DNA of 64,000 nt, taken from the sequence record LR745206.1; one strand, 5' to 3'. Made by a program: the position numbers and the translations under genes. The stretch's first letter is position 1. The number at the start of each line of letters is the position of its first letter. The notes beneath the pieces were generated by a model. It had not been told where the DNA came from and ran no database searches. It worked only from the letters and a program-made list of their open reading frames with translations. Of the stretch, positions 192-62,378 are shown one piece after another.

Positions 192-534
192 GATAGTAAA
201 TCTAACTCCATTCTCTATACTTTCTCAAGTAAATGAAATAGAACATCACACTTTATTAGAGATTACCACTATCGTAATAGAAAATAGTGGTAATTTTTTT
301 TACATAAAAGATGAAGTTGAAAAGATATTAGATGTCTCTAATATGCCTCAGTATATTAAAGAAGATTGGATTAATTATAACAAAAAAGAATTAAATATTG
401 CTTTATTGAATCACCAGATAAAGAATCTCGAAAATATTCTTGAATATAAAAGACCATATGATGAAAAGGATGAAGAAGCTCTTATTTTATTGAAATCTTT
501 GAGAAGGGATTTAATTATCAACGGGCTTATCTAA
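184..534 (+). CDS. hypothetical protein
   Basis: ORF 124..534; ATG184 overlaps the end of the upstream gene. Confidence 0.6.
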   Translation: MDRIVNLTPFSILSQVNEIEHHTLLEITTIVIENSGNFFYIKDEVEKILDVSNMPQYIKEDWINYNKKELNIALLNHQIKNLENILEYKRPYDEKDEEALILLKSLRRDLIINGLI

Positions 535-966
535 ACTAAAAACAATATCAATAAATAAAATAAAACTAGTATTGATTTTATTTTCCTTAGTGTATTCTCT
601 TAGTGTATCAACATCACTAAACCATTGTCCACCAGTAACCCTAACAAATAGTGAGTTTAATTTACAAACACATCTGCTTTCGAAGTGTTCAATAGAACTT
701 TGTAAATCATCAAAAAAATCATCAGTGAAGTTGAAATTTTTATTACTTAATCTAACACAAAGACCCTTGAATGATTTTTTATTATTGAAATCATTTGGAT
801 TGTCTATAATTTTTTTACCATCCATTGGTGAAAAATTACCAACAAAACAATCATTTACTGATAATCCGTGATCTGCTACGGGAAGAAATATATCACGTAC
901 CTCATCAAATGAGATGCTTTTTTCAAAGTTCTCAATAAAGTTCTCAAACAATTTAACATACTTCAT
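511..966 (-). CDS. putative virion-internal protein with N-terminal tag
   Basis: Restarted at MKYVKLFENF (ATG 966), TAATATATA 4 nt upstream. Confidence 0.7.
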   Translation of the reverse strand: MKYVKLFENFIENFEKSISFDEVRDIFLPVADHGLSVNDCFVGNFSPMDGKKIIDNPNDFNNKKSFKGLCVRLSNKNFNFTDDFFDDLQSSIEHFESRCVCKLNSLFVRVTGGQWFSDVDTLREYTKENKINTSFILFIDIVFSLDKPVDN

Positions 967-990
967 AGTGTATATATTAATATAATTCCT

Positions 991-998
991 TATATTTG
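991..998 (+). promoter_or_regulatory. Bacteroidota-type -7 promoter element TAnnTTTG
   Basis: TATATTTG 4 nt before ATG1003. Confidence 0.65.
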
Positions 999-1002
999 CT
1001 TC

Positions 1003-1164
1003 ATGGATAATATAACTACACATAAAGACCCAACAGAAAACTACACACCAGTAGGTCAAACATTCTGTAAGGGTAAATGCGATACGAAAGCTATAAGAAC
1101 GAAAGAAGGTCTTGTTGTTCTTTGTGATGGATGTAAAAGGGTTGTTATTGATAATAGAGATTAG
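1003..1164 (+). CDS. small Cys-rich (zinc-finger-like) protein, 53 aa
   Basis: Hand-translated MDNITTH...FCKGKC...LCDGCKRVVIDNRD; below ORF-track cutoff. Confidence 0.65.
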   Translation: MDNITTHKDPTENYTPVGQTFCKGKCDTKAIRTKEGLVVLCDGCKRVVIDNRD

Positions 1165-1529
1165 TGGAATATTTACCAGGTATAATAGATGAAAGTCTTC
1201 AAAAATTAAATTATTTTGAAATATTAAATGATTTTAATGTACCATTGTACCCTAATAGATTCGATGATGATATTTCAAACAATGATATTACGGATTCAAT
1301 AGAATTTAAAGGTGGTGAAATATTAATTCTTAGATGGTTTAAACCAAAAACAACAAGAACACTTTATAGTTTTGTGGTTGGATATTATAAATCAGATAAG
1401 TACCATGAGGTTAAAAGAGAATGTCCTATGAGTATGGATTTTGTTTCTATCAATACTGCTATACTTAATAATATAACCAATTCATTTGTAAGAGAATTGA
1501 AGATAGATTCTATATTATATGGTTTGTAG
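1164..1529 (+). CDS. hypothetical protein with C-terminal RxxK motif
   Basis: Ends VRELKIDSILYGL. Confidence 0.65.
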   Translation: MEYLPGIIDESLQKLNYFEILNDFNVPLYPNRFDDDISNNDITDSIEFKGGEILILRWFKPKTTRTLYSFVVGYYKSDKYHEVKRECPMSMDFVSINTAILNNITNSFVRELKIDSILYGL

Positions 1530-16794: not shown

Positions 16795-17052
16795 ATGAGA
16801 TTATCAGAAGTAAAAGAAAATCAAATTGTTAAAATTGGTGAAATGGTTTTGTTGAAATTACCAAATGGTGAATTTGATTGCGCTTTACCTGGTTGTAAAT
16901 TAAAAACTGGTAAAATGACAATGGATGTCAATGTTGAGTTGGCTACAAAAGAAGAATTCCTAAATGCGATTGATAAAGCAGAACATGATAGTGATTGGTA
17001 TTCCTTACTATTGAAGGATGTTATGATATATCATACAAATAAAATATTTTAA
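16795..17052 (+). CDS. hypothetical protein
   Basis: ATG after terminator, MRLSEVKENQ. Confidence 0.55.
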   Translation: MRLSEVKENQIVKIGEMVLLKLPNGEFDCALPGCKLKTGKMTMDVNVELATKEEFLNAIDKAEHDSDWYSLLLKDVMIYHTNKIF

Positions 17053-17303
17053 TATTCTATCTTAGTAACATTTCTTAATTCCACCTCATATTCACTACCA
17101 TCAATCTCAACAGTTACCAATCCATCATTATCAATACTAACAGCTTTTAATGGATCCGCTGGATCATTACCTGGTAAATCTATCACTATTGTTGCATAGA
17201 TAACACCATCACTTTTAATACACTCAATTACATCATCTTGTGTAATGAGAGTTCCACCCTCATTATTTTTCTTAAAATCCTCAAAAAGCATTACCCATTT
17301 CAT
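17049..17303 (-). CDS. small protein with N-terminal tag
   Basis: MKWVMLFEDF; TTTATATATA 5 nt upstream. Confidence 0.65.
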   Translation of the reverse strand: MKWVMLFEDFKKNNEGGTLITQDDVIECIKSDGVIYATIVIDLPGNDPADPLKAVSIDNDGLVTVEIDGSEYEVELRNVTKIEY

Positions 17304-17450: not shown

Positions 17451-18197
17451 ATGAAATATTTGAGAAAATTTAATGAAGAACTTAAACCACAGACTTATAG
17501 AAGAGCTGCTTATAAGCTTAAGAAAATGGGTCATGTTGATAGAGCATCTGAGTTAGATAAATGGGGTGATAAAATAGAAGATGATTTAAATTATAAGAAA
17601 TGGGGAAAAAACTTAGAAGAATATGCTAAGTTTGGAACATATAAATTAAATATCAAAACAAAGAAGGGTGATATAAATGGTGATTTCTATTTAGATATTA
17701 ACTTTGATGGTGATTCTTTTATTGATTCATTATATGATAATGATGAAAATGGAAATAAAGAAGGTGGTATATGGTTTTTCGTTGGTATTATACCAACAAC
17801 AGAAGAATTGATGAAAGATTGTATGAGTAAATTTCCTGATCCTGATATGGGTAATGGGTTTTTCTGTGGACTTAGTGTTGGATTGGATTTTGAAATAATT
17901 AATAATAAAGTTGAATTTAAAAAATTCAATTTATCTAATTATGATGAATCAATTTCTGGTGATATTTCATTAGGTGATAGACAATCTGCTGGTAGATTTA
18001 GAAATCTATTAAAATCAATGTTTACGAATCCATCGTTGAATTATCCAAGTGGTAGAACTGATGTTGAGTATATGTATCAAGCATTCGAACAAATTATTTT
18101 AAGTGAAGCTGGATTTTCATCTGATTATGGATTTAGATTAGAAGATGCTGTTGAATTTATTAACACTATATCACCAAATACAATGTATAAAGCTTAA
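17451..18197 (+). CDS. tagged putative virion-internal protein, paralog 1
   Basis: MKYLRKFNEEL...KMGHVDRASEL; GDFYLDINF. Confidence 0.75.
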   Translation: MKYLRKFNEELKPQTYRRAAYKLKKMGHVDRASELDKWGDKIEDDLNYKKWGKNLEEYAKFGTYKLNIKTKKGDINGDFYLDINFDGDSFIDSLYDNDENGNKEGGIWFFVGIIPTTEELMKDCMSKFPDPDMGNGFFCGLSVGLDFEIINNKVEFKKFNLSNYDESISGDISLGDRQSAGRFRNLLKSMFTNPSLNYPSGRTDVEYMYQAFEQIILSEAGFSSDYGFRLEDAVEFINTISPNTMYKA

Positions 18198-18198: not shown

Positions 18199-19074
18199 AT
18201 GAAATACTTAAAGAGATTTAATGAAGAGTTACAACCTTATACTTATAGAAAGGCTGCTGATAAATTAACCAAAATGGGTCATGTTAGAAGAGGTAGTGAA
18301 TTAACAAAATGGGCTGATGAAACACAAATTAAATTAGATAAACAAAGAGAAATAGAAAATTATAATAGACTATCTAAATATCCATCATTTGAAATGGAGA
18401 TAAGAAAAGATAGATGGAATTCAAGTTCAAAATCCAGGGATTTCGCACAAGAACCTCTGATAAAAGGTAATTTCTTCATAGATATATCATTTGAAGATGA
18501 TATGTTTAATGATCAATATAGTGATTGGTTGGATGATAAATCATATGGATTAAACATATTCTTCACCGTTGGTATTTTCCCAGCAGATGATGAAACTAGA
18601 ATTAAACTAAAACAAATAGAAGATAAATTATCCGATGAAGTATATGATTCTGCTTACTATCCAATTTGGATGGGTTTCAAGTTATCAAATCCAAAAGACA
18701 CTAAAATAGATTTCCCGAAATCATTTATATGGGACACCAGAGAAAATGACACTTTGTTATTTTCAAATAGAAGAGAAGCTCTAAAGTTTAAACGATTATT
18801 ATCAGATTGTTTTGAGGGTAAGAATAAATTTGGTGAATCCAAATGGTCTCCTGATGGTATAGGTGAGGTTGTTAAGAAAAGGTTTACACTAACCGAGGAT
18901 CAACAAATAGAAAGATTTTCTTGGATACATAAAAATGATACACCAGAAGATATTCAAGAGAAAAGAAGAAAATCTATTGAAAGAATTGGTGATAATTTTC
19001 TTACAATAGATAATTATAATGAATTAGTGAGTGTTATTAAGTCTATATCAATAAATAAATTATATAGACATTAA
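18199..19074 (+). CDS. tagged putative virion-internal protein, paralog 2
   Basis: MKYLKRFNEEL...KMGHVRRGSEL; GNFFIDISF. Confidence 0.75.
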   Translation: MKYLKRFNEELQPYTYRKAADKLTKMGHVRRGSELTKWADETQIKLDKQREIENYNRLSKYPSFEMEIRKDRWNSSSKSRDFAQEPLIKGNFFIDISFEDDMFNDQYSDWLDDKSYGLNIFFTVGIFPADDETRIKLKQIEDKLSDEVYDSAYYPIWMGFKLSNPKDTKIDFPKSFIWDTRENDTLLFSNRREALKFKRLLSDCFEGKNKFGESKWSPDGIGEVVKKRFTLTEDQQIERFSWIHKNDTPEDIQEKRRKSIERIGDNFLTIDNYNELVSVIKSISINKLYRH

Positions 19075-19843
19075 ATGAAATATTTAAAAAAAATATCAGA
19101 GGAATTAAAAAGTAGTGTCTATAAATCTGCTGCTGATATCAAAAAAGAGAGTGGTTGATTTGGAAGAATGGTCTAATATAAAAGCAGATAAGGAAAAATT
19201 AGAAGAAAGAAAGGAACTAATTAAAAAAATTGGAACTATTGGAACTTTTAATATGAGTATGAATAATGAGTATGTTGGTGATTTTTATATAAATCTTTCT
19301 TTTGATAGTTGGCAACTTAATGATCATTATAGTAATTGGATTTCAGATGGTGTTGGTTCCGGTCTCTTCTTATACCTTAATATAGCTGTTTTACCATTGA
19401 ATTCAGATTTTGATTCGAGTGATTTTGCTAATTCTAATAATAAGAACACTGATGGTACCTATTGGATTGGTGAGATTGGATTACATTTAGGTAATTATCC
19501 TAGTGATGTGGATGTAGATGAAATGTATAATATATATGAAGAAGATAACCTTTCACCTAATTTACCACACCCGATAAACCCAAATGGTTATTTGGGTTTT
19601 GATTATTGGGAAAAACCCTTTCTATTCTCGGATAGAAGGAATGCTGCTAAGTTCAGAAAGGCTTTGATTGATATATTCAGAGGAAATGTTATTTATAAAG
19701 AAACTCCGGAGAATCCTGGTGGATTAAAAGGTGATGTTATGGATATTCTTTGCTCTGATCGACCAATATATACCATTGGTGAGTTTGAAGGATTTATAAA
19801 ATCATTAAGTAGAATAAATATTAATAGATTTTTTAAAGATTAA
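19075..19843 (+). pseudogene. paralog 3, frameshifted near codon 22-27
   Basis: MKYLKKISEELKSSVYKSAAD ends at TGA 19156-19158; homologous body (GDFYINLSF) continues in the +1 frame. Confidence 0.65.
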
Positions 19844-19856: not shown

Positions 19857-20201
19857 ATGATAATTAAGAAATATATAAGATTTTTAGAATCAAATTGGAC
19901 ACCAGAGGATATACTAAAAGAGTTATCTTTGGATTTGAAAGATAATGGTCTACATGTTGATTTTCCAAATGATAATAAATTTGGTGGTAGATTCTATCTT
20001 AGTGTAGATGATACTGATAAAGTATTTTGTAAAAATTATCCAAGTGATGATATGGATTGGTTACATAATAAACCAATTATGTTGAAGTTCTATGATGAAT
20101 TATCCGACTTCGGATTCAATAGAGATATAGACTTTAAACTTTATGGTGGTGGAACTGGTGTTAATATAGTATTTGATGATAAGAAAGTAGTTAAATTGTA
20201 A
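19857..20201 (+). CDS. small tagged protein
   Basis: MIIKKYIRFLES; DILKELSLDLKDNG module. Confidence 0.65.
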   Translation: MIIKKYIRFLESNWTPEDILKELSLDLKDNGLHVDFPNDNKFGGRFYLSVDDTDKVFCKNYPSDDMDWLHNKPIMLKFYDELSDFGFNRDIDFKLYGGGTGVNIVFDDKKVVKL

Positions 20202-21373
20202 TGATATTAAAAAAATATAAAATGTTTTTAGAAAGTAGAGAGAGTGATATGTGGGATATTATTCCAAAGTCAGTTAAAGACTTACATAAACTTTTTCAAG
20301 CAAGTGGTAAGAAGTTATACCTTGTTGGTGGATCAGTGCGTGACTTCTTAACAAAGGATAAACCAAAAGATTTTGACTTAGCAACAGATGCTCTTCCTGA
20401 TGAAGTGTTAGAGATTGTTGGTGGTAAATATAGAACTAATCTACAAGGTAAAGCCTTTGGTGTTGTTGTAGTTTACACAAAAGAAATTCCAGAGGGAATG
20501 GAAATTGCAACTTTTAGAGAGGATATTTCTAAAGGTAGAAATCCTGAGGTTAAATTAGGAGTTACTATTGAAGATGATGTTAAACGTAGGGATATCACAT
20601 ATAACGCATTATTCTATGATTTGGATAAGAAAGAGATTATTGATTTAACTGGTGGTAGAACAGATCTAGAATCTGGTATTACTAGAATGGTTGGTGATCC
20701 AATGGAAAGATTTGATGAGGATTCACTTCGTATTCTTCGAGCATTTCGATTTGCTTCGAGATATGAACATCCACTACATAAAGATACAGAACGTGCAATA
20801 GAGAAGAGGAAACAACTAGAGAATGTTGATCCAGAGAGTGGTGAAATGAAAAGAATTTCACAAGAAAGAGTTTGGGAAGAAATGACTAAAGCTTGGAAAC
20901 AAGCTAAGGATTACAATTATTATTTAAACTTCTTTACTAAGTTTGGTATGTGGGATCAAGTATTCCCTGGTGCTGATATCAATACCAATTTGATAGATTC
21001 TAAAAACTTTGTCATTTTGATTGCTAATCTATTCAAGAATGAAAGTACTGATGGATTGGAAGAAAGACTAATACAGGAATATAAAATTGATGGTGATACT
21101 GTAACAAAAGTAATCTTTTTGATTAAGTTTTTGAAATTTACACCAGAGGTTGTATTTGATACTTATAAAAAGAAACAACAATGTGGTATTGACGATGCAA
21201 CTATTCTAGAATGGATAGATGTTAATAATATTACTGATGAATCATTTATTAAATTTGTTGAATATAAACCATCTGTCTCTGCTCAAGATTTGATGTCACA
21301 AGGTTTCAAAGGTGCTGAATTGGGTATAGAGATTAAAAGATTGGAGATAGAAAAATTCAAGAAAATACTATGA
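20201..21373 (+). CDS. cca: class II tRNA nucleotidyltransferase (CCA-adding / poly(A) polymerase family)
   Basis: VGGSVRD, KDFDLAT, EIATFR, EDDVKRRDITYNAL, EDSLRILRAFRF. Confidence 0.92.
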   Translation: MILKKYKMFLESRESDMWDIIPKSVKDLHKLFQASGKKLYLVGGSVRDFLTKDKPKDFDLATDALPDEVLEIVGGKYRTNLQGKAFGVVVVYTKEIPEGMEIATFREDISKGRNPEVKLGVTIEDDVKRRDITYNALFYDLDKKEIIDLTGGRTDLESGITRMVGDPMERFDEDSLRILRAFRFASRYEHPLHKDTERAIEKRKQLENVDPESGEMKRISQERVWEEMTKAWKQAKDYNYYLNFFTKFGMWDQVFPGADINTNLIDSKNFVILIANLFKNESTDGLEERLIQEYKIDGDTVTKVIFLIKFLKFTPEVVFDTYKKKQQCGIDDATILEWIDVNNITDESFIKFVEYKPSVSAQDLMSQGFKGAELGIEIKRLEIEKFKKIL

Positions 21374-22329
21374 GATTAAAAAAATATAATCAATTTATAA
21401 AAGAATCTCTTGGTATTAGATTGGATCATGAGGGTAAGCCAAGATGCACCGCTTTTGATGGTGGCGTCGAACATGGTGATATTGATTATACTGAGGTAGA
21501 AAATCTAAAGCCTAATGTTATAGATGAATTTATTGAAGAGATAAAAAGATGTATTGAGATTAATCATGAGGTTTTAGCTACTGATTTATCAAGTAGGATA
21601 GACACTGCTATTAATAAGGTTTTTGGTAGTGATATTAAATGGTATTTCAAACCGGTTGATACAGAAAAAGATTCAAGTAAGTTTTCATTTCATTATGATG
21701 ATTTATCATTAGCTTTGGCTAAGTTGATTAACCTAGGGTACTCAATAGGATATGTAACTCAAAAATACTCCACTGATAGAAGTTGGAACTTTTCAAATTT
21801 TTTTGGTTATGATGGTGAAATATACACAAGTGAAAAGGATTTTAAGAAAATATCTTCCAATCCAATAGACTATCATGGACCAGATATATCACACCATTGT
21901 ATATTAGCTAGTTCATTTGATATAAAAACCTCATTATCAGAGGAACATATTACTTATGGTATAGAGGACCAAGGTAGGAGTGAAATATCTGTTATATTCC
22001 CAAAAGCATTTGGATATGGTTATGATGCTGGTGCTAAAATGGTTGACCTCGAAAGAGATTTATATTATGAGAAAATAGGAACAACTTATGATAGATATCA
22101 TAACTTGATGATGAATGATGATAGAACTACGGAAGAAGAAAAGGAGTATGTAGATATACAACGTAAAGAAGATGTCATTAGATATGGTGAGGAACATGTT
22201 AAGAAGAGAGAACAAGAAAGAAAGGATTTTGATGCCTTACCGAAAGAAGAACAAGAAAGAAGAAGGAAAATTAATAAAGAAAAAATGGCTGAATTTCTCA
22301 AAGATTTAGACCTTGATGGGATTTTATAA
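21370..22329 (+). CDS. tagged hypothetical protein
   Basis: MRLKKYNQFIKES; charged C-terminus. Confidence 0.65.
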   Translation: MRLKKYNQFIKESLGIRLDHEGKPRCTAFDGGVEHGDIDYTEVENLKPNVIDEFIEEIKRCIEINHEVLATDLSSRIDTAINKVFGSDIKWYFKPVDTEKDSSKFSFHYDDLSLALAKLINLGYSIGYVTQKYSTDRSWNFSNFFGYDGEIYTSEKDFKKISSNPIDYHGPDISHHCILASSFDIKTSLSEEHITYGIEDQGRSEISVIFPKAFGYGYDAGAKMVDLERDLYYEKIGTTYDRYHNLMMNDDRTTEEEKEYVDIQRKEDVIRYGEEHVKKREQERKDFDALPKEEQERRRKINKEKMAEFLKDLDLDGIL

Positions 22330-24359: not shown

Positions 24360-24680
24360 ATGAAATACTTAAAAGCTATTGAAAATTTTAATCCAAAATT
24401 TAAAGAACCAAAATACACAAGTGGTCCTAATATTGGATTAGATATACGTGATAGACATGGTGTTAAAATGATTGATAATATGATATCAAAAAAACAAGGT
24501 GTTATAGATGGTGATAATATTTTGTGGAAATATGTAAACGATCAATGGGTTGGTAAAAGATATGTTATGACTACTAAACACAGACATATTTGGTTAAGTG
24601 AACTACGTCCCGGGGAAGAAATAAAATCTTGGGTATCTGGTGAAAATGCTGACTATGAAGAAGTATTTAATGATAATTAA
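24360..24680 (+). CDS. tagged hypothetical protein
   Basis: MKYLKAIENF. Confidence 0.65.
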   Translation: MKYLKAIENFNPKFKEPKYTSGPNIGLDIRDRHGVKMIDNMISKKQGVIDGDNILWKYVNDQWVGKRYVMTTKHRHIWLSELRPGEEIKSWVSGENADYEEVFNDN

Positions 24681-24682: not shown

Positions 24683-25135
24683 ATGAAACATATAAAAACC
24701 TTTAATCAAAAGTATCATACTGAAAGTTATCCAGAAAATTGGAAGGATATCAAAAAAGAATTGGATGAAAAGTCTTATTACTTAGATTATCCTGAGTTAA
24801 TATATGCTTTTGCTGATTTAATCGATGAAGAAGTTATAAAAATAGAAGATATCACTAAACTATATAAATATCAAAAATCATCTAAAACAAATAGTGGAGT
24901 AACGAAAGATGCTTATTATGGTGTGATAGTATATGATATCAAAATCAAAATATTAGATAAATCTAGAGTAGATGAATATATCAATTATAGGTCTAAAGAA
25001 GCTTATTTCCTATTTCGAGAATATTATGGTTATACCATTTTGAATGGTCACACACTTGATTACTTTACTAAATGGTATACAGATAGAGATATTGATGAAT
25101 TTAATCTTTATTCTAAAGCGGTTTGGGTTGATTAA
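24683..25135 (+). CDS. tagged hypothetical protein
   Basis: MKHIKTFNQ. Confidence 0.65.
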   Translation: MKHIKTFNQKYHTESYPENWKDIKKELDEKSYYLDYPELIYAFADLIDEEVIKIEDITKLYKYQKSSKTNSGVTKDAYYGVIVYDIKIKILDKSRVDEYINYRSKEAYFLFREYYGYTILNGHTLDYFTKWYTDRDIDEFNLYSKAVWVD

Positions 25136-25520
25136 AATATCCACTTCGTTTACCCCACTTATCAATTTTAATAATACAGAAGTTATCACCTCCACTTTTT
25201 GATCTCCAACCCAACCCATATGATTTTAAACTATCGATAAAATCATCTATTATGTGGTTATTAGTTAGATTGTTATCTAATATATTATTATCATCAGTTA
25301 TTTTTATTATAATATAATTTTTATACTCATTGGAATATCTGGTGTTTGTGTGTATTGTTATTCTAGGATCTCTTAATAAATGTGTATGATTACCATTAAC
25401 AATTTCAACTTGTAATCCAATATCTTCAAGTTCTAGTGAAAGGTCCTTTAAAACTTGAATTTTTTTATCAACTAAGGTTTCCTTCCTTTCGAATATTTCA
25501 TATGATAATATATTAATCAT
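25113..25520 (-). CDS. tagged hypothetical protein
   Basis: Restarted at MINILSYEIFE (ATG 25520), AATATATA upstream. Confidence 0.6.
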   Translation of the reverse strand: MINILSYEIFERKETLVDKKIQVLKDLSLELEDIGLQVEIVNGNHTHLLRDPRITIHTNTRYSNEYKNYIIIKITDDNNILDNNLTNNHIIDDFIDSLKSYGLGWRSKSGGDNFCIIKIDKWGKRSGYFNQPKPL

Positions 25521-31360: not shown

Positions 31361-31588
31361 ATGAGATACAAATCAGGAGACGTTGTGATTAAAACCACTG
31401 GTGGTAATAAAATGTCAATATTTGATGTTGTTAGTGAGGGAGTTTATAAATGTATTTGGTGTGTTGGTAGTAGAATGAATGAATCCCTATTTAAAGAAGA
31501 TGAAATAATACCAATTTCTGAGTATAGAATTGTTGAAGAAAGGCAGTATAAGATTGATGAATTATTGAAAAATTCTAAGGATGAATAA
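31361..31588 (+). CDS. DUF2158-like small protein with RxxK motif
   Basis: KSGDVV..KTTGGNKM..CIW; ends ERQYKIDELLKN. Confidence 0.55.
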   Translation: MRYKSGDVVIKTTGGNKMSIFDVVSEGVYKCIWCVGSRMNESLFKEDEIIPISEYRIVEERQYKIDELLKNSKDE

Positions 31589-32180
31589 CTTTACCAGATG
31601 ATGTTTTGAAAACTGGCCATTTACAATCCATTTCAAAATAAACTCTAATTTCTAAAGGATTAATATGACTCATACTTCTTATTTGAGATTCTGTAAACTT
31701 AGTTTGCCAAAAACACATTTCCATTTTATACCCAATTGATTTTAATCTATTTTTAGCTTCGATTATATCATCCAATAAATCCACACCTTCTTCTCCTAAC
31801 CAACCAGCCTTTTCATATGGGAAATCAATACCGATGGATAAAAATCCAATAATCCATTTACCATTATATTTAGGTATATAAAAATCTGATATTGATTCTA
31901 AATCATGTTCTGATGGTGTTGGGTAAAAATTTCTATTATAAAGAAATCTCTCATCATTTTCAATTATTGAGTTAGTAGATGCGTTAAACCCTTCATAGAA
32001 ACCACCAAATGTATATGATTTTATAATACCCATGTCATTTAATGGTGCTAATGTATCAGTTATATTACCGAATATATCAATTATCTTAATAGAGTTAGAT
32101 TTAGTTAATTCTCTTTTAACATCTAAATAAGATGGTATTTCACTATTATCCTCATTGAATTTGTCCCAGCCTTGAATCAT
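31575..32180 (-). CDS. tagged hypothetical protein
   Basis: MIQGWDKFNE; KNRLKSIGY module. Confidence 0.65.
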   Translation of the reverse strand: MIQGWDKFNEDNSEIPSYLDVKRELTKSNSIKIIDIFGNITDTLAPLNDMGIIKSYTFGGFYEGFNASTNSIIENDERFLYNRNFYPTPSEHDLESISDFYIPKYNGKWIIGFLSIGIDFPYEKAGWLGEEGVDLLDDIIEAKNRLKSIGYKMEMCFWQTKFTESQIRSMSHINPLEIRVYFEMDCKWPVFKTSSGKVIHP

Positions 32181-32557: not shown

Positions 32558-33244
32558 ATGCAACACTTAGACAAGTATAAATATTTCCAAATAAATGAAG
32601 CTGATGAGAATAAACCTAAAGATCAACCAAAAAGATCTGAGAGGGTTTTAAATCAAGCACAAAAGGAATGGGATGGTGAGCAAGAATCTAAAATAGATCA
32701 AAATACTGAAAGTATGCCAACTATGTTGTTTACTGATGTTGTTGGATCATCAAAGATGTGGTCAGATGATCCAAAGAGTATGTCTGAGCAATTAAAAGAA
32801 CATCATGAATTAGTAAATAGTTTATCTGAGAAGTATCATGGTTGGGTTGTTAAGACAATTGGAGATGCTTTTATGATATATTTTGATCCAAGTAAGGATT
32901 CTTTAATAAATGCTCTTAAATTCTCAAAAGAGTTAACCAAGAATGAAAAGAAATATCAACTAAGAATTGGTGTATGTTCTGGTAACATGGAGACTAGGAC
33001 ATATAGATTACAAAAGGTTAATCTTAAAGACTTCTTTGGTAATGCTGTTAATACTGCATCAAGAATGGAGTCGAAAGTTTCTGACTCAAGGGGAGTAGCT
33101 TTCACATCAGTTAAGCCAATTTCTAAAGAGATATTGAGTAGAATAGGCAAAGAGGTTGGTCAGGTATTAAAAGCAGATCTTTCTGATATTGATCTAAGAG
33201 GTGTAAGTGTTGAATCAGCTTATAAGATAAGATTTGGTAATTAA
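32558..33244 (+). CDS. class III adenylate/guanylate cyclase
   Basis: LFTDVVGSS, VKTIGDAFM, LRIGVCSG, DFFGNAVNTASRMES. Confidence 0.9.
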   Translation: MQHLDKYKYFQINEADENKPKDQPKRSERVLNQAQKEWDGEQESKIDQNTESMPTMLFTDVVGSSKMWSDDPKSMSEQLKEHHELVNSLSEKYHGWVVKTIGDAFMIYFDPSKDSLINALKFSKELTKNEKKYQLRIGVCSGNMETRTYRLQKVNLKDFFGNAVNTASRMESKVSDSRGVAFTSVKPISKEILSRIGKEVGQVLKADLSDIDLRGVSVESAYKIRFGN

Positions 33245-33942
33245 TCCTCTGACTCAGAAATATCATCGACCCAGAATTTAACAGTTAACCAGGTATTACC
33301 TTGGTGTGTTCCATGTTCATAATAATCAAATCCAAATTTCTGAATCATTCTATCTAACTTATCTTCTATATCACTTGGTATTTCACCATCATAACTAAAA
33401 GACTCAGCTCCAACATGTATGATATTACCATCATATTCAATTTCTTCCACCTTTAACCCAAAAAATTCAAATTGTTTTATTATATCATCCTTTGTTGGAA
33501 TATCCGAATCAGTTTTTATATCTGGTTTTGTGAAGTAATAACTAATTGATATAAATTCACCGGAGTTAGTATCAGAGAAGTCAAATTTATTCATTGACCA
33601 ACCCATATCAACTATCCTACTAACAGCAGGCACCATTCCTGTAATAATATTACTGAATTCTTTATAATCACATCGTTTTGATATTATAATATGAAATGCA
33701 CTTTTAATTTTATTACCAGCTACATATATCGGTTTAAATTCATTTATCTTTTCATCATTCTTATTAAGAAAATCATCCATACTAATCCCACCGAATCTTG
33801 AGTTAAATTTCACATTATATCCATCATCTATAAATTCACTCATAATATCAACTAAATTAGGTAATAATTCATTAATTTCACCCTTCATAGATTTATCCTC
33901 TTTGATATAAGTATATTTATTATATTTGTGTAAATATTTCAT
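33241..33942 (-). CDS. tagged hypothetical protein
   Basis: MKYLHKYN; DIMSEFIDDG module. Confidence 0.65.
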   Translation of the reverse strand: MKYLHKYNKYTYIKEDKSMKGEINELLPNLVDIMSEFIDDGYNVKFNSRFGGISMDDFLNKNDEKINEFKPIYVAGNKIKSAFHIIISKRCDYKEFSNIITGMVPAVSRIVDMGWSMNKFDFSDTNSGEFISISYYFTKPDIKTDSDIPTKDDIIKQFEFFGLKVEEIEYDGNIIHVGAESFSYDGEIPSDIEDKLDRMIQKFGFDYYEHGTHQGNTWLTVKFWVDDISESED

Positions 33943-39340: not shown

Positions 39341-39784
39341 TTAAACATCATATGGTGCCCAATCATCAGATTCTCCCTCTTCTGACTTTATACCACTATG
39401 TTTCATGTGACAAACAACATTTACATATGCTGTTGTTGAGAAATTCAATTCAAATTCAAATCCTATTATATATCCTAGAGCTTCTAATCTATTTTTTGAT
39501 TCTTCTAGAATTTTAAATATATCTAATTCTTCTTCTATCCTTTTAAGATTAGTATATCCATAGGCATCACCCTTATTTATGAAACCAAGTGATAAATCTT
39601 CGGTTAGACTCTTTTTTAATTCAAAAAAGTATTTACCATTATAGTGAGAAACACCACCATAGAATTTTATCTCATGTCCACTATCTATCAACTCTATGAA
39701 ATAATCTTTTACATCATCATTAGTAAGATACTCTGGTTTATCGGATTCGAAAAGTTTGAAATTCTTAAGCTGTTTCACCACCAA
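39341..39784 (-). CDS. tagged hypothetical protein
   Basis: KQLKNFKLFES; DVKDYFIELIDSG; KNRLEALGY. Confidence 0.65.
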   Translation of the reverse strand: MVVKQLKNFKLFESDKPEYLTNDDVKDYFIELIDSGHEIKFYGGVSHYNGKYFFELKKSLTEDLSLGFINKGDAYGYTNLKRIEEELDIFKILEESKNRLEALGYIIGFEFELNFSTTAYVNVVCHMKHSGIKSEEGESDDWAPYDV

Positions 39785-40880
39785 CTATCTTTTTTATTTG
39801 ATCAATTTGGTCTTTCTTAGTATCATCTTGTAAGATATCAGCAATATCTGCAACAGTTTTCATCTTCTCTGGATCATCCTTTATCTTACCTAGTGATTCT
39901 GCTGCTTTCTTAGCTTCTTCACTTTTATCACCAGACTTCATTAAAATATCAGATAGTGTTTTCTTAAATGGTTTACCCTCAGCATCTTCAAATCCAACTT
40001 CTTCTCCTGTTATTGATTTAATTTCCTTTATACCTATTTGTTCATTTTGAAGCTCTTTCATTTTACCTTCTTCTGGTTTCTTTTTCTCATCATCACTAAG
40101 ACTTTTCCACTCTTCTTCATTGAACTTATCTCTCTTATAAACAACAACATCACCAACTTTATATTCTTCTGTTGTAGTTTCTTCTTGTTTAATACCTTTT
40201 GAATCAAGATATGCTTTAATTTCCTCTGGTTTTATTTCCTTTATATATTTTAATATAGTAGGTATTAAGTTTTTACTTACCCAATTTGATGTAGATTCCT
40301 TCTTTTTCTTATTATCTTCACCAGACCCTTGTAAAATCTTTTTAAGATCAGGCAGGTGTGTCTTGTCAGTTAAATCCATCTTCTTAGCTTCTGGATTCAC
40401 CTTAGATTCTTCACCGACTTTCAAATCAGGACCACCAGCGAATTTATAATCTTTGATAGCTCTATTTCTAGCGGTTTCAAAATAAAATTTAATTGTTTCT
40501 AATTCTCTATTATCATTACCAAATACTTTCGATAATCCATCATATAATGGTTGTAATCCTTGTGATCCAAGAGCACCTGTTTGTGGATCCAATATATCAT
40601 CCACTAGTTTGAGACAATCTTCATTATTAGCTTCTGTCTTTTTCTTAAATTCTTCTAAAACACTTTTAAATAAATAAGTACCACTTGATGGGTTAAACAC
40701 ATTATTTTCAACCCAATTATCCAATTGTTCTGTTGTTGGTTTTTCCCCAAGTTTCTTTAATTCTTCGGTAGCTTTATTCCACATATTTTTAAAGAAATTA
40801 ATCAAACCACCTAATAATTCTTCATTAACTGGTTCCGTCTTTTTGTTTCTGAATGATTCAAATGTTCTTACGTATTTCAT
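39765..40880 (-). CDS. tagged hypothetical protein
   Basis: MKYVRTFESF...PVNEELLG; K/E-rich. Confidence 0.7.
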   Translation of the reverse strand: MKYVRTFESFRNKKTEPVNEELLGGLINFFKNMWNKATEELKKLGEKPTTEQLDNWVENNVFNPSSGTYLFKSVLEEFKKKTEANNEDCLKLVDDILDPQTGALGSQGLQPLYDGLSKVFGNDNRELETIKFYFETARNRAIKDYKFAGGPDLKVGEESKVNPEAKKMDLTDKTHLPDLKKILQGSGEDNKKKKESTSNWVSKNLIPTILKYIKEIKPEEIKAYLDSKGIKQEETTTEEYKVGDVVVYKRDKFNEEEWKSLSDDEKKKPEEGKMKELQNEQIGIKEIKSITGEEVGFEDAEGKPFKKTLSDILMKSGDKSEEAKKAAESLGKIKDDPEKMKTVADIADILQDDTKKDQIDQIKKIVGGETA

Positions 40881-40977: not shown

Positions 40978-41454
40978 ATGGAAAAGATTAACGCATTAAA
41001 CCAAGTAGCGGAGTTTCATCAAACATTTGATGCTCCAATTTTAGATAAACCACAGATACCAGATGAACAAAGATGTCAACTTAGAGTAAATCTCTTACAA
41101 GAAGAATTGAATGAGTTATCACAAGCGATAAAAGATAATGATATAATTGAAATAGCTGATGCTCTTTGTGATTTACAATATGTTTTATCAGGAGCAGTTC
41201 TTGAATTCGGATTGGGTGATAAATTCGTAGAATTGTTTGATGAAGTTCAGAGAAGTAATATGTCAAAGGCATGTGATACAATGCAAGAAGCATTAGCAAC
41301 CTTATCACATTATAAACAAAGAGATGGAACAGAAGGAAATTACAAAAAAGTAAATGGTAAATGGGTCGTTTATAGAAATGAAGATAACAAAGTTCTTAAA
41401 TCTGTTAATTACTCACCAGCTGAATTAAAAAATATAATAGATGATGAAGATTAA
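40978..41454 (+). CDS. MazG-like / PRA-PH-type NTP pyrophosphohydrolase
   Basis: VAEFH, LLQEELNEL, IADALCDLQYV, VQRSNMSK, KVLKS. Confidence 0.85.
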   Translation: MEKINALNQVAEFHQTFDAPILDKPQIPDEQRCQLRVNLLQEELNELSQAIKDNDIIEIADALCDLQYVLSGAVLEFGLGDKFVELFDEVQRSNMSKACDTMQEALATLSHYKQRDGTEGNYKKVNGKWVVYRNEDNKVLKSVNYSPAELKNIIDDED

Positions 41455-41896
41455 TAAATTTAATGAACACAAAAATACTATGGTGGTATCAGCATTCCCT
41501 GGGTGTGGTAAATCACATCTATTTAGAAATAAAGGAGATAAGAAGATATTAGATAGTGATTCCTCAACTTTTGATAAATCACAATTCCCACAAAACTACA
41601 TCGAACACATAAAGTCAAATATTGGATTGGTTGATGTTATCTTAGTATCTTCTCATAAAGAGGTAAGAGATGCTCTTGTCGAAGAAGGTATAGAATTCAC
41701 ACTTGTTTATCCAGGTAGAGATATAAAAGATGAGTATATACAGAGATACATTGATCGAGGTAATGATGATAACTTTGTCAAATTATTAAAAAGCAACTGG
41801 GATATCTGGTTGAGTGAATTAGAAGATCAAACTGGGTGTAGTAAAATGGAGTTAAATTCCGGTCAATACTTATCTGATGTTTTAAATATAAATTAA
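41441..41896 (+). CDS. small P-loop NTPase/kinase
   Basis: AFPGCGKS Walker A; N-terminus MKINKFNE. Confidence 0.7.
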   Translation: MMKINKFNEHKNTMVVSAFPGCGKSHLFRNKGDKKILDSDSSTFDKSQFPQNYIEHIKSNIGLVDVILVSSHKEVRDALVEEGIEFTLVYPGRDIKDEYIQRYIDRGNDDNFVKLLKSNWDIWLSELEDQTGCSKMELNSGQYLSDVLNIN

Positions 41897-50075: not shown

Positions 50076-50083
50076 TAACAAAT

Positions 50084-50338: not shown

Positions 50339-50383
50339 AACAAAATCTATATAAAAGATATAAAATAAAAATAATATTAATTA

Positions 50384-51562: not shown

Positions 51563-51564
51563 TT

Positions 51565-57304: not shown

Positions 57305-57733
57305 ATGAAACACTTAAAGAAATTTAATGAGGAATTGGTTCCTAGATTCCCCTCATATAATAGAGGTGAAGTGATTGTTTTTTCTAAAGATTTGGATTAT
57401 AAAAGTGCTCAAATGTTTGCTAAGAAGCTTGGTTATGAAATAACAGGTGAGGTTAGAGATGATGGATACTTAGTAAAAACTCCAATTGGTGAAGAGGAAC
57501 AAGCTGGTGCTGATTTTGTTGATAATTATCCAGAATTCTTTTATAGTTACGAAAGGGAAGATATCAAAGATACTATGGTGTACGATGAGTTGGATGATAT
57601 CAAAAGTGATATTGAAGATTTAAGAGATTCATTAGGTAGTCTAAATAAGTTTGGTAAGAGTTTATTACCAAATGATTGGAATGATAATATAGATAAAATT
57701 ATTACAAGACTACAAAATACAAAACATGAATAA
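57305..57733 (+). CDS. tagged hypothetical protein
   Basis: MKHLKKFNEEL. Confidence 0.65.
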   Translation: MKHLKKFNEELVPRFPSYNRGEVIVFSKDLDYKSAQMFAKKLGYEITGEVRDDGYLVKTPIGEEEQAGADFVDNYPEFFYSYEREDIKDTMVYDELDDIKSDIEDLRDSLGSLNKFGKSLLPNDWNDNIDKIITRLQNTKHE

Positions 57734-57929
57734 AATAAAATCATTTAAATTATTTGAATCGGAAATATCTTGGAAGTCTTTTGAAGAATTTTTAAATGAT
57801 GTACAAGATGTTTTTGTTGAAATAATGGATGATGATATTCTAATAAGTGAATATGGTCAATATTCATTCATTTATCAAGATGATGATGTATCTATGATTA
57901 TAATGAATCAGTTGATAAAATCAAATTAA
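57726..57929 (+). CDS. short tagged protein, possibly truncated
   Basis: MNKIKSFKLFES; DVQDVFVEIMDD. Confidence 0.55.
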   Translation: MNKIKSFKLFESEISWKSFEEFLNDVQDVFVEIMDDDILISEYGQYSFIYQDDDVSMIIMNQLIKSN

Positions 57930-58538: not shown

Positions 58539-58784
58539 TTATTTAAGTGGTTTGTAATTAGGTATTGCACCTTTGTAGTTAGAGTTACCTTTTCTAAGTT
58601 CTTCTCTCTCAGCTTCAACTGCAGCTTCGTATTCTGGATCATTCTTTTCTTCCTTCTTACAATCCATACATATAACATCCTCATTGAATTGGCTCATTGT
58701 TGTGATATTGTTTGTTGGTTTACCACATCTATCACAATTATCTCTTCTCATGGAGAATGATTCGAATGTTTCTAAATTATCCAT
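58539..58784 (-). CDS. small Cys4 zinc-finger protein with tag
   Basis: MDNLETFESF; CDRC...MSQFNEDVICMDC. Confidence 0.7.
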   Translation of the reverse strand: MDNLETFESFSMRRDNCDRCGKPTNNITTMSQFNEDVICMDCKKEEKNDPEYEAAVEAEREELRKGNSNYKGAIPNYKPLK

Positions 58785-59651: not shown

Positions 59652-60308
59652 ATGGATAAGTTAAAAACACTTGAGATCAAAAAGCTTCTAAAGGAATTAG
59701 ATTATATAGAATCTGATTTTGAATACCGATCAGAGGTTATAAGCGAAGCTGATTCTGAATTTATAAAGTGTGTTAATAGTTTTTTGGACGCACATCCTGA
59801 ATTAAAAGAAATATATGACCAAAAAATAACTGACCAAATAAATAGAACTATAAAGGAAAAAGTTGATATCTCTATTAAAAATGAGGAAGAGGCTATTGAA
59901 GTTGAAGAAGCTGAAAAGGAATTTATAGATTCTGGTGATGATATAGTAGTAGAATCTGATAAAATAATAGAAACCATTTCACCTAAATTAAAAAAGCTTT
60001 ATAGAGAGATTGTTAAATTAACACATCCAGATAAAGTTAAGAAGAAAAAGTTAAATGATATTTATATAAAGGCAACAGACTATTATAATCTAAATGATAA
60101 GATTGGTATTTATAAGATATGTTCCGACTTGGATATTTATTATGAAATTGAAATTGAAGATGGGGATTTCATATCCAATAAAATAGATTCATATAAAAAG
60201 AAAATAGGTTTTATGGAATCCACCTTTACTTGGAGATGGTATAGAACCGAGAATGAAAATGAGAAAAATCAAATATTGATTAATTATATTAAATTAAGAA
60301 TTCAATAA
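59652..60308 (+). CDS. J-domain protein
   Basis: LKKLYREIVKLTHPDK with HPD motif. Confidence 0.8.
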   Translation: MDKLKTLEIKKLLKELDYIESDFEYRSEVISEADSEFIKCVNSFLDAHPELKEIYDQKITDQINRTIKEKVDISIKNEEEAIEVEEAEKEFIDSGDDIVVESDKIIETISPKLKKLYREIVKLTHPDKVKKKKLNDIYIKATDYYNLNDKIGIYKICSDLDIYYEIEIEDGDFISNKIDSYKKKIGFMESTFTWRWYRTENENEKNQILINYIKLRIQ

Positions 60309-60310
60309 AC

Positions 60311-60946
60311 TCATAGAATATTCACTTTAACATTTCTATCAGATAATAAATCCTGTAATTCTTCTCTTCTAAATGATTTTTGATAAATATCATTCTCTTT
60401 ATCGATATTTTGAAGCACCCACTCATTACCATTTGATGTTTGGTAAATATAATTATCATCACCATCTAATATCTCGATGGTTCTAGATGTTAGTTTATCA
60501 TAAAATTTCTTAACATCATCATTTATCTTATAAAGTTTAACATCCTCCCAAGATTTCATTGTTTCATTCCAAACTTGGAATAATAAATAAACAGGATTTT
60601 CCAATTCATTACTATTGATATCAAAGATAAACATAAACTTACAAGGTTTATTTAGGAATGTTTGAAAGTCTTCACTATTCTTTAACTCAGATTTTTTAAG
60701 TGCTATACTTGATAGTGAATTTATAAACTCAACATTATCACTCAATGTGTCTATATCTAACTTACTAGAAAACATCTCTGTTGGTAATTTGAATGTATCA
60801 TAAATATCAACTTCCTCTGCTGATACTGAATTTAAAAGAGCACCATGCCATATATTTAATGATTCTAACAGATCTTGCATGTTCTGGAACGTTAAGTCAA
60901 CAACAACAGACTCCTTAAAAGTTTTATATGATTTAATATAACGCAT
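60311..60946 (-). CDS. tagged hypothetical protein
   Basis: MRYIKSYKTFKES. Confidence 0.7.
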   Translation of the reverse strand: MRYIKSYKTFKESVVVDLTFQNMQDLLESLNIWHGALLNSVSAEEVDIYDTFKLPTEMFSSKLDIDTLSDNVEFINSLSSIALKKSELKNSEDFQTFLNKPCKFMFIFDINSNELENPVYLLFQVWNETMKSWEDVKLYKINDDVKKFYDKLTSRTIEILDGDDNYIYQTSNGNEWVLQNIDKENDIYQKSFRREELQDLLSDRNVKVNIL

Positions 60947-60968
60947 TAATGTTTTGAGTTTAATTTTT

Positions 60969-60980
60969 TAATATATATTA
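60969..60980. promoter_or_regulatory. second palindromic TAATATATATTA between divergent genes
   Basis: Between ATG60946(-) and ATG61002(+). Confidence 0.55.
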
Positions 60981-61001
60981 AAAATCGATTCTGATAAATA
61001 A

Positions 61002-62378
61002 ATGAAGTGGTTAAGAAATTTCGAATTATTCAAAGAGGCTAAGACCTATTCTAATAAAAACATCATTAGTGAACTGTGTATATCTATGGTTTTATTGAAT
61101 GGTGAATTTTTAGATAATATTTTGGATCGTGGGTTAAAAGCTAGATATTCTGAAAACTCAGATATATTTCTAACTGATCTAAAGAATCTACTTCTTGCTA
61201 AGAATAGATTATGTCTTGGTAAATTTATTGATAATAAGTGTGTACAGGATGATGAGATATCAAAGATAAATGGATTATTTGATTCAGTTGAGTTCAATAT
61301 TGAGAAAGACTGGAATGTTCTTGTTAATTCTAGAATATCAGCTAGAAATATAATTGATAAGTTAATACCTGATGAAAAATTAGAATCAGAAAGAATCAGA
61401 AAGATATTTTGGATAGGTCCAAATAAGGATGGTGATTACCAAGAGGATATAGTTATCGAATTGAGTGATGGGAAGCAATTTTCTTTCTTCTTGAATAAGA
61501 ATCTATCAGCTAGTAAAACTTCATCATTTAGCTTATTTGCTGAAGAGTTGATAGGAGCTGACCTTGATAGATTATTCAAAGAGGATTATCTACCTAGATG
61601 GGATAAGCTTACACAAGAATGGATTAGAATACTTTATGAGCATTCTAATAAGAACATACAGTTACATATAGAGAAGTTTATAGATCCTAAAAGAATTGAG
61701 TCAATTGGTTATTTTGAATATTTTGATATAAGACATAGTGATGTTAGGTTCAAGCACTTAGGTGAGTTCATGAGAGATTTCAATAAGAATATATTGAAAT
61801 TTCAAGATCTAATGTCGGAGATTTGGAAAAATAGAGATAGTTGTTTCTCTGATCCAGAAGGTGTTTATAAAGAATGGATGGAAACTAAAATAGTTATACT
61901 AAATTCTAAAATATTAGAAAATTTAATAACAACTTCATTGAAGTATAATTATGGTGAGAATATTGAAAAATTAGAAGATGGTTTTAAGTTAGCATCAGGT
62001 ACAATCAAAATGAAGTTATTCAAAACACTTGTTGAGAAGATGGGTTGTCTTGAAAGACCACTTTATTTTTTAGGTAATAATGGTAATGTATTTCATATGG
62101 TACCATCCAGAGAATTCTTTAGAGAATTTTATGATGATTTGAAAATAAAATTTGATTATCATGTTAACTTCTCTGTTAGTGAGGATGAGGATAATAATGA
62201 TTTCAATATGGTGATAAAGCTTGATCTTGATGATGATACATTATTAGAGATGTTAATTACTATTAAGTTTTCTGGTGGTGAGATGTCTGGTAAGCTATCT
62301 GCTAAGCATAAGTTTGAATTATCAGACAATTTCAATTATTTAATATCCAAGAAACAATTAGGGGAAACCGAGGAATAG
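61002..62378 (+). CDS. tagged 458-aa hypothetical protein
   Basis: MKWLRNFELFKEA. Confidence 0.75.
   Translation: MKWLRNFELFKEAKTYSNKNIISELCISMVLLNGEFLDNILDRGLKARYSENSDIFLTDLKNLLLAKNRLCLGKFIDNKCVQDDEISKINGLFDSVEFNIEKDWNVLVNSRISARNIIDKLIPDEKLESERIRKIFWIGPNKDGDYQEDIVIELSDGKQFSFFLNKNLSASKTSSFSLFAEELIGADLDRLFKEDYLPRWDKLTQEWIRILYEHSNKNIQLHIEKFIDPKRIESIGYFEYFDIRHSDVRFKHLGEFMRDFNKNILKFQDLMSEIWKNRDSCFSDPEGVYKEWMETKIVILNSKILENLITTSLKYNYGENIEKLEDGFKLASGTIKMKLFKTLVEKMGCLERPLYFLGNNGNVFHMVPSREFFREFYDDLKIKFDYHVNFSVSEDEDNNDFNMVIKLDLDDDTLLEMLITIKFSGGEMSGKLSAKHKFELSDNFNYLISKKQLGETEE

Follow-up and report, generated by a model that had tools for sequence, protein, structure and literature searches.

Background

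In phage T4, about three internal proteins (plus a few in relatives) carry a capsid-targeting sequence (CTS) that sends them into the assembling head. The CTS is the first 10 residues, where residues 4 and 7 govern targeting and residues 8 and 10 govern processing, and the prohead protease gp21 cuts after L/I-x-E (PMC9026906). In T4 IPII/IPIII it reads MKTYQEFIAE. Giant phages of the phiKZ-like group (for example SPN3US and 201phi2-1) also pack tens of different proteins into the head and trim N-terminal propeptides of head and ejection proteins with a gp175/gp245-type prohead protease cutting after Glu (PMC5694885, PMC7411985). Those propeptides are long and not a shared short motif, and their cleavage motif is S/A/G-x-E. 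In terms of how the system works, rather than of membership, encapsulin cargo-loading peptides are also comparable, since a short terminal peptide is sufficient to load diverse enzymes into an HK97-fold protein shell. However, those peptides are C-terminal, bind the shell protein directly, are not cleaved, and belong to cellular nanocompartments rather than virions.

Here, we analyzed a 64,000-nt stretch (the window) of LR745206.1, a 634,780-bp uncultured "Mahaphage". The original prediction was that about 25 proteins of the window share an N-terminal tag resembling the T4 CTS, and that this is a large cargo-addressing system loading dozens of proteins, including Cca and a cyclase, into the head for injection with the DNA.

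Results

The observation held and proved larger than first described. Every N-terminus that had been listed was found in its place, and about 21 gene starts in the window, not about 25, carry a convincing tag (Table 1, which also includes one remnant ORF). The starts at 2323 (MKHLLILDLDE) and 48393 (MKYKFKFEIDY) are probably chance look-alikes. Genome-wide, at least 116 of 888 ORF-genes carry M-K-[YH]-[LI]-[KR]-x-[FY]-[ENK]-E, and about 25 more carry a second form, M-I-K-K-[YFW]-x-x-F-[IL]-x-E-S.

Table 1. Tagged gene starts and related ORFs in the window (positions of the window).
Position	Strand	Length	N-terminus	Remarks
511..966	-	151 aa	MKYVKLFENF	Tag starts at an internal ATG of the longest ORF; TTAATATATA lies just upstream of the ATG
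17049..17303	-	84 aa	MKWVMLFEDF	LR756502 ortholog keeps 9 of the first 11 residues at 60% overall identity
17339..17392	+	17 aa	MKWMKKYEELDTKVYRR	Remnant ORF carrying a tag; looks like a decayed copy of the 17451 family
17451..18197	+	248 aa	MKYLRKFNEE	First of three tandem paralogs; ortholog body 38% identical, first 11 residues match at 8 of 11
18199..19074	+	291 aa	MKYLKRFNEE	Second tandem paralog; tag starts at an internal ATG of the longest ORF
19075..19843	+	27 aa (tag ORF)	MKYLKKISEE	Third paralog, broken; tag ORF 19075-19158, body continues in another frame (19115-19843) after a frameshift at an A-run
19857..20201	+	114 aa	MIIKKYIRFLES	Second tag form
20201..21373	+	390 aa	MILKKYKMFLES	CCA-adding enzyme; PolyA_pol domain starts at aa 39; homologs in more than 400 other phage records align only from residue 13-34 onward
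21370..22329	+	319 aa	MRLKKYNQFIKES	Contains the T4-like Y-x-x-F-I-x-E pattern
24360..24680	+	106 aa	MKYLKAIENF	
24683..25135	+	150 aa	MKHIKTFNQ	
25113..25520	-	135 aa	MINILSYEIFERKE	Promoter-like element upstream
31575..32180	-	201 aa	MIQGWDKFNED	Variant tag; promoter-like element upstream
32558..33244	+	228 aa	MQHLDKYKYFQINE	Nucleotide cyclase; Guanylate_cyc domain covers aa 55-177; promoter-like element upstream
33241..33942	-	233 aa	MKYLHKYNKYTYIKED	
39765..40880	-	371 aa	MKYVRTFESF	
41441..41896	+	151 aa	MMKINKFNE	P-loop protein; the Walker A motif follows directly
57305..57733	+	142 aa	MKHLKKFNEE	
57726..57929	+	67 aa	MNKIKSFKLFES	
58539..58784	-	81 aa	MDNLETFESF	Weaker match
60311..60946	-	211 aa	MRYIKSYKTFKES	Orthologs carry MRYLMNYKLYKES, MKWIKGYKSFTES, MKILKYKQFVES and MKYLKKYKDYLES
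61002..62378	+	458 aa	MKWLRNFELFKE	A 60%-identical ortholog carries the second tag form, MKLIKKYSLFLES

To assess whether the tag could arise by chance, we built a position matrix from 12 window N-termini and scored the rest of the same genome at 10 bits or more. It hit 76 of 788 gene starts, 6 of 3,173 internal Met positions, and 82 of 22,625 ATGs in all six frames, against 0-1 hits in three 5th-order-Markov random genomes and 0-1 when residues 2-10 were permuted within each N-terminus. Lack of enrichment over an AT-rich null had been named beforehand as an outcome that would refute the prediction, and this was clearly not the case. The tag is essentially absent from cellular genomes, and the equally AT-rich related phages PTm1 (0 of 123 genes) and Lak-B5 (0 of 93) have none, whereas it is common in several hundred related viral contigs.

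The consensus spans residues 1-12. Position 4 (L/I in 94%, L/I/V in 97%) and position 7 (F/Y in 93%) are the two most conserved, and these are the positions that matter for targeting in the T4 CTS. Substitutions are conservative at the amino-acid level (Y/H/W, L/I/V, K/R, F/Y). Synonymous codon usage at tag positions equals genome usage, so the constraint acts on the peptide and not on the DNA. The tag is followed by a D/E-rich segment (21% acidic in residues 12-40) without any hydrophobic stretch, and thus lacks the hydrophobic core of a Sec, Tat or lipoprotein signal peptide. AlphaFold gave no confident structure for it (pLDDT 24-28 over residues 1-20).

The tag is modular. With the first 14 residues removed, the 116 tagged proteins fell into 110 BLAST clusters, 97 of them singletons at E below 1e-4, and Pfam shows unrelated folds (PolyA_pol, cyclase, NUDIX, M15 peptidase and methyltransferase). 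Orthologs exchange the two tag forms, and the tag is more conserved than the protein body (8-10 of 11 residues against 31-60% overall). On Cca it is an add-on that the Cca of other phages lacks. It is also selective: DHFR, FolD, PRPP synthetase, CoaE, the epimerase and the DNA methylases in the window start directly with their catalytic domain and carry no tag.

Regarding the end of the tag, a strict [LI]-x-E within residues 5-15 occurs in 41% of tagged against 16% of untagged proteins, [LIF]-x-E in 69% against 20%, and [LIFMV]-x-E-[SANG] in 50% against 6% (p 4e-29), although the specificity of this phage's protease is unknown. Many tags have F or T three residues before the Glu. After the first Glu, the next residue is S in 44 proteins, N in 16, A in 13 and G in 7.

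Similarity to the T4 tag depends on the tag form. The main form does not score as similar, since T4 internal proteins score negative with the Mahaphage matrix. On the other hand, 24 N-termini carry [YFW]-x-x-[FY]-[ILV]-x-E where about 3 are expected (about eight times the expected number), which is the pattern of T4 IPII/IPIII; only the minor second form shares the exact T4 pattern.

The same genome encodes a T4-type head module: a Portal_T4 match (E 2.7e-57), a Gp23-type capsid protein (E 1.8e-26), and terminase, sheath and gp4 homologs of T4. The 707-aa protein directly upstream of the capsid gene matches the PTm1 "prohead core scaffolding protein and protease" (BLASTP, E 2e-22), and its family profile matches T4 gp21 by hhalign (94.8% probability, E 4.8e-8), where GEFDHP aligns with GELNHP and VSSRAAG with VSSRGLG. 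In this protein, the gp21-family protease is fused to a scaffold with about 12 repeats of Y-S-E-Y-[IL]-A-E-N-L-D-K-N-I, while the T4 tag reads Y-Q-E-F-I-A-E. The repeats are kept in 78 of 78 relatives and in more distant Mahaphages. Small tagged genes sit directly downstream of the capsid gene and are conserved there in relatives.

A promoter-like element, AATATATA, lies upstream of 44% of tagged genes against 15% of untagged, and 83% of tagged against 28% of untagged genes lie in same-strand runs headed by it (p 7e-30). The same element precedes the terminase, portal, protease-scaffold, gp25 and tail-tube genes. Its reading as a late promoter rests only on this presence upstream of structural genes, not on expression data.

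Discussion

We suggest that the tag is most likely a capsid-targeting propeptide of the T4 type, expanded to a very large cargo set, and we hold this reading with no more than moderate confidence. In this view, residues 2-8 would form a short amphipathic segment, with basic residues at 2 and 5 and aromatic or aliphatic residues at 3, 4 and 7, and often 10-11, that docks the newly made late protein onto the prohead scaffolding core, which would be the C-terminal, repeat-containing part of the protease-scaffold fusion. After shell assembly, the gp21-family serine protease at the N-terminus of the same protein would cut after the Glu that ends the tag ([L/I/F]-x-E followed by S, N, A or G) and also within the scaffold repeats ([IL]-A-E). 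The cargo would thereby be released inside the head, to be delivered with the DNA.

The analysis itself establishes that the tag exists, is selected as a peptide and is modular, that the T4-type head genes, the protease and the scaffold repeats are present, and that tagged genes share a promoter-like element with virion genes; binding to the scaffold, cleavage, presence in the virion and injection are inferred from sequence alone for this uncultured phage. Thus, the interpretation of the original prediction is partly supported, and it underestimated the scale, since the tag is on at least 116-140 genes and is shared by a whole lineage of uncultured phages.

When compared to the T4 CTS, the tag shares the location at the extreme N-terminus of otherwise unrelated proteins, a length of 10-12 residues and the Met-Lys start. 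It differs in the size of the cargo set, in the main consensus, in the frequent F three positions before the Glu and in the fusion of the protease to a repeat-containing scaffold. Moreover, the cargo is mostly acidic (median pI 4.9; 11% above pI 8), unlike the basic T4 internal proteins, and packaging 13-17% of all gene products would be unprecedented. When compared to phiKZ-like phages, the head module here is T4-like. We found no description of the tag in the searchable literature.

An alternative, which we consider unlikely but cannot exclude, is that the tag addresses proteins to a destination other than the capsid interior through an amphipathic N-terminal docking helix: a phage-built compartment or assembly factory, the membrane, or a phage-encoded chaperone, unfoldase or protease that sorts or times late proteins. 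Any sorting system would produce a modular, peptide-level, virus-specific signal. Besides, the acidic cargo includes ordinary cytoplasmic enzymes (Cca, two NUDIX proteins, a methyltransferase and a cyclase), more than 116 cargo proteins is a lot for one capsid, and the main tag form is not measurably similar to the T4 tag. However, no candidate receptor or compartment gene was identified, and the lack of a hydrophobic core means that the tag is not a secretion signal. This reading does not explain the [LIF]-x-E followed by a small residue, the resemblance to the scaffold repeats and to T4 IPII/III, or the tagged genes inside the head-gene module. In its boldest and similarly unlikely version, the tag would not be a capsid signal but the address label of a so far unknown phage-encoded protein-sorting system in huge Bacteroidota phages, for example for import into a phage-made compartment or hand-over to a dedicated unfoldase, used by about 15% of the proteome and diagnostic of a whole uncultured lineage.

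It is more doubtful that the tag is an expression feature of late, largely leaderless mRNAs without any sorting role, with the first 10 or so codons, or the nascent peptide, selected for efficient initiation or early elongation in a Bacteroidota host without Shine-Dalgarno pairing. In 30 of 116 tagged genes the promoter-like element ends only 4-5 nt before the ATG, which implies leaderless or near-leaderless transcripts, and tag codons are mostly pure A/T codons. Nevertheless, the synonymous codon usage and the conservative substitutions argue against it, most tagged genes sit inside operon-like runs without their own element, structural late genes with the same element are untagged, and Bacteroidota phages of equal GC (PTm1, Lak) lack the tag. 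It does not explain the conserved Glu followed by a small residue at positions 9-12 either.

Finally, despite tandem arrays of tagged genes, some true paralog pairs and the frequent co-occurrence of promoter and tag, it is very unlikely that the tag is only the conserved but functionless N-terminus of one huge, fast-diverging paralog family or a recombination cassette (promoter plus start) that shuffles genes, given the many unrelated clusters and folds, the absence of DNA-level conservation that could serve as recombination homology, and the stronger purifying selection on the tag than on the protein bodies.

If the tag is a capsid-targeting sequence, one of the largest known phages pre-loads its head with 100 or more different proteins, including a CCA-adding enzyme, NUDIX hydrolases, a nucleotide cyclase, a cell-wall peptidase, a methyltransferase and about 100 acidic ORFans. 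That would be an injected proteome far beyond anything described for T4 or phiKZ-like phages. The tag would also offer a set of natural variants of a short, portable packaging signal for phage-capsid cargo engineering. The tag would then work as a sequence-only predictor of injected proteins, which are likely anti-defence and take-over factors, across hundreds of uncultured phage genomes, and would assign a role to a large share of their "dark matter" genes.

Results

The sequence lies within LR745206.1, an uncultured phage genome of 634,780 bp, and it is 100% identical to that record (window position x corresponds to record position x + 496,000). Its GC content is about 29%. The source paper places all genomes above 634 kb in the 'Mahaphage' clade, with predicted Bacteroidetes hosts (PMC7162821). 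We extended the analysis to the rest of the record, so that the motif was tested on sequence that had not contributed to the original prediction. Genes were called with a crude criterion (ORFs from the first ATG, at least 60 aa), and all counts are therefore approximate.

At the level of the observation, the original prediction of a shared N-terminal tag was confirmed, and the tag is much more widespread than proposed. All the N-termini it listed are present, and about 21 gene starts in the window carry the tag (about 25 proteins had been proposed), one of which (19075) is split from its body by a frameshift; one further copy is a short remnant. A two-component mixture model on residues 2-12 of 888 ORF-genes separated 116 genes (13%), with the profile K2 (72%), Y/H3 (88%), L/I4 (94%), K/R5 (74%), F/Y7 (93%), E/N/K8 and E9. 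Typical forms are MKYLKxFNES, MKYLKxYK[LI]FES and MKYLKxFE[ND]F. A second form, M-I-K-K-[YFW]-x-[QEK]-F-[IL]-x-E-S, adds about 25 more genes, including three in the window; the expectation-maximisation search for this form was noisy, with about 25 convincing members out of 50. Orthologs in related contigs exchange the two forms, so they are one system.

We tested whether AT-richness alone could produce the tag, using a matrix trained only on 12 window N-termini and scored on the rest of the genome at 10 bits or more. It hit 76 of 788 gene starts outside the window, but only 6 of 3,173 internal Met positions, 0-1 positions in 5th-order Markov random genomes and 0-1 when residues 2-10 were permuted within each N-terminus. 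Phages of equal or lower GC that share the same capsid lineage have no tags (PTm1, 0 of 123 genes; Lak-B5, 0 of 93). Thus, the signal is not a by-product of AT-rich codons.

Synonymous codon use at the conserved positions equals genome usage (K2 is AAA:AAG 74:26, against 74:26 genome-wide, and L4 is encoded by TTA, CTA, TTG and CTT), whereas substitutions are conservative at the protein level. The constraint is therefore on the peptide, and a DNA-level signal was rejected. Between LR745206 and LR756502, orthologs that are only 31-60% identical overall keep 8-10 of the first 11 residues.

With the first 14 residues removed, the 116 proteins fall into 110 BLAST clusters, 97 of them singletons, which rejects a single paralog family. 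Only about nine have a Pfam domain: Cca/PolyA_pol, Guanylate_cyc, two NUDIX, Peptidase_M15_4, a methyltransferase, a Zn protease, DUF6576 and Hc1. PHROGs agreed. In the underlying alignment (A1), the minus-strand references lack the initial Met and include the stop codon, which does not affect the Pfam and PHROG results. The Hc1 histone-like protein was not used as evidence, since its MEYLDKYDSLL start may be part of the Hc1 domain itself. On Cca, the tag lies N-terminal to everything that aligns with solved CCA enzymes and with more than 400 other phage Cca genes. In contrast, housekeeping enzymes in the window start directly with their domain and are untagged: DHFR, FolD, PRPP synthetase, CoaE, the epimerase, guanylate kinase and the DNA methylases.

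A degenerate DNA pattern for MK[YH]LKxFNE retrieved at least 120 stretches from IMG/VR, on contigs of 8-675 kb and 23-35% GC, and 292 of 1,288 genes in those loci are tagged. Several of these contigs also carry a capsid gene 70-80% identical to that of this phage. Tag density falls with distance from this phage: 15-24% of genes in LR745206, about 5% in LR756504, about 2% in LR756501 and LR756500, and 0 in Lak-B5 and PTm1.

A cellular or prophage origin was rejected, because a scan of 596 Gb of bacterial and archaeal genomes (185,579 species) gave only 23 stretches. Of these, 16 came from one MAG, 'Candidatus Muiribacterium halophilum' bin 137 (JALOAD01 contigs), with up to 5 matches per 8 kb. 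It also holds orthologs of window genes 60311 and 61002, and these contigs are probably a mis-binned huge phage of this lineage.

Regarding the head machinery, the genome has T4-like terminase, portal, sheath, tube, gp4, gp25 and capsid genes. The 707-aa protein encoded directly upstream of the capsid gene is a prohead protease fused to a scaffold, with the protease domain at about residues 1-200. It matches the annotated 'prohead core scaffolding protein and protease' of PTm1 by BLASTP at E 2e-22, and gives a weak Peptidase_S77 hit in Pfam. A PDB sequence search with the protease domain found nothing meaningful, but a profile of the family matches T4 gp21 at 94.8% probability (E 4.8e-8), with the His (GEFDHP/GELNHP) and Ser (VSSRAAG/VSSRGLG) motifs aligned. 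Its N-terminus, KPVLIIEN, recalls the LIE-9 site of gp21 (PMC9026906). The C-terminal part holds about 12 tandem 13-residue repeats, Y-S-E-Y-[IL]-A-E-N-L-D-K-N-I, followed by an acidic block. Each repeat holds an [IL]-A-E site, so the scaffold looks built to be cut into short peptides. The repeats are present in all 78 relatives examined and in LR756504 and LR756501. Besides, the N-terminal region of the capsid protein (KKWSPVLEN ... SINEN) aligns with T4 gp23 (NKWKPLLEG ... KIFEN).

A promoter-like element, TTAATATATA, lies upstream of 44% of tagged genes against 15% of untagged (odds ratio 4.4, p 1.6e-11). It precedes the terminase, portal, protease-scaffold, gp25 and tube genes, with close variants before the capsid and sheath genes. 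When same-strand runs headed by the element are counted, 83% of tagged genes are covered against 28% of untagged (p 7e-30). It resembles the T4 late promoter, TATAAATA. Tagged proteins are therefore probably made together with virion proteins. The element occurs in two spacing classes, ending either 4-5 nt or about 20-27 nt before the ATG; the short spacing, seen in many tagged genes, suggests leaderless late mRNAs.

Coordinates of individual features in the window and in record LR745206.1
Reference	Coordinates	Strand	Feature
Window	945-1010		Promoter-like element
Window	8847-9665		N6/N4 methylase
Window	15257-16741		DUF2201 metallopeptidase/VWA protein
Window	17339-17392		17-aa remnant carrying a copy of the tag
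Window	19075-19843		Third tandem paralog of the 17451 family, split by a frameshift at the A-run 'caaaaaag' (about 19140-19150); the 27-aa tag ORF and the body lie in different frames; could be a pseudogene, a homopolymer assembly error or programmed slippage
Window	19857 (start)		Gene with the second tag form
Window	20201 (start)		Gene with the second tag form (Cca)
Window	21370 (start)		Gene with the second tag form
Window	25521-25545		Promoter-like element
Window	26651-26725	+	Single tRNA-Met (CAT) gene
Window	30083-30979		D12 adenine methylase
Window	32181-32200		Promoter-like element
Window	32535-32557		Promoter-like element
Window	41900-52745	+	Same-strand block of untagged metabolic genes: NAD-dependent epimerase/dehydratase, PRPP synthetase, FolD, DHFR and an AAA_28 kinase-like protein
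Window	58784-59284	-	Small protein sharing segments of the N-terminal region of the major capsid protein
Window	60947-61001		Divergent pair of promoter-like elements between two tagged genes
Record	93266-93520		Small protein sharing segments of the N-terminal region of the major capsid protein; also carries the tag
Record	195382-197286	-	Full-length RNase II/R-type exoribonuclease (RNB, CSD2 and S1 domains, E 5e-112), inside the head-gene module between the portal and protease genes
Record	198546-200669		Prohead protease fused to the repeat-containing scaffold (707 aa)
Record	291407-291880		Small protein sharing segments of the N-terminal region of the major capsid protein
Record	567352-567567		Probable location of the protein with the Hc1 histone-like hit

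The three small capsid-related proteins share GMG[AS]V..AQP..LAG.T...GSGD, or KKWAPIIES...SINEN, without the capsid fold. They may be capsid-arm or propeptide mimics that co-assemble with the head.

Discussion

We compared the tag with the capsid-targeting sequence of T4, where IPII and IPIII start MKTYQEFIAEA and IPI starts MKTFKEFTST. In T4, the first 10 residues suffice for targeting, residues 4 and 7 matter for targeting, residues 8 and 10 matter for processing, and gp21 cuts after L/I-x-E (PMC9026906). The two most conserved positions of the Mahaphage tag are also 4 and 7. The tag ends in [LIF]-x-E in 69% of cases, against 20% of untagged proteins, and the Glu is often followed by S, N, A or G. 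The T4 pattern, generalised as [YFW]-x-x-[FY]-[ILV]-x-E, occurs in the first 16 residues of 24 proteins, where about 3 are expected, and it is also the core of the scaffold repeat (Y-S-E-Y-I-A-E). However, the T4 internal proteins score negative with the main-form matrix and do not stand out, so the resemblance of the main form to T4 is limited to M-K, position 4, position 7 and a nearby Glu. Thus, the main form is analogous to the T4 tag rather than demonstrably homologous.

Some points do not fit neatly. Tagged proteins are acidic (median pI 4.9; 11% above pI 8) and their residues 12-40 are D/E-rich, unlike the basic T4 internal proteins. The number of putative cargo species is unprecedented. 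A rough mass estimate of about 150 species x 10 copies x 22 kDa gives about 33 MDa, under 10% of the DNA mass and a smaller share than that of the internal proteins in T4. AlphaFold was uninformative for the tag: a model of the 60311-60946 family built with 5 sequences reached a mean pLDDT of 53, with 24-28 in the tag region, and was not used for a fold search. We found no description of the tag in the searchable literature.

Among the alternatives, a sorting signal for a different destination remains possible but unlikely, and an expression feature of leaderless late mRNAs is more doubtful still. A functionless family or cassette remnant is very improbable.

The interpretation of the original prediction, a cargo-addressing system that loads proteins into the head, is partly supported. 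Our analyses establish the tag itself, its constraint at the peptide level, its presence on unrelated proteins and the T4-type head genes alongside it, whereas targeting to the capsid and cleavage of the tag are inferred from sequence and by analogy with T4. With moderate confidence, we suggest that the best explanation is a T4-type capsid-targeting and cleavage propeptide that has been massively expanded in one lineage of huge Bacteroidota phages.
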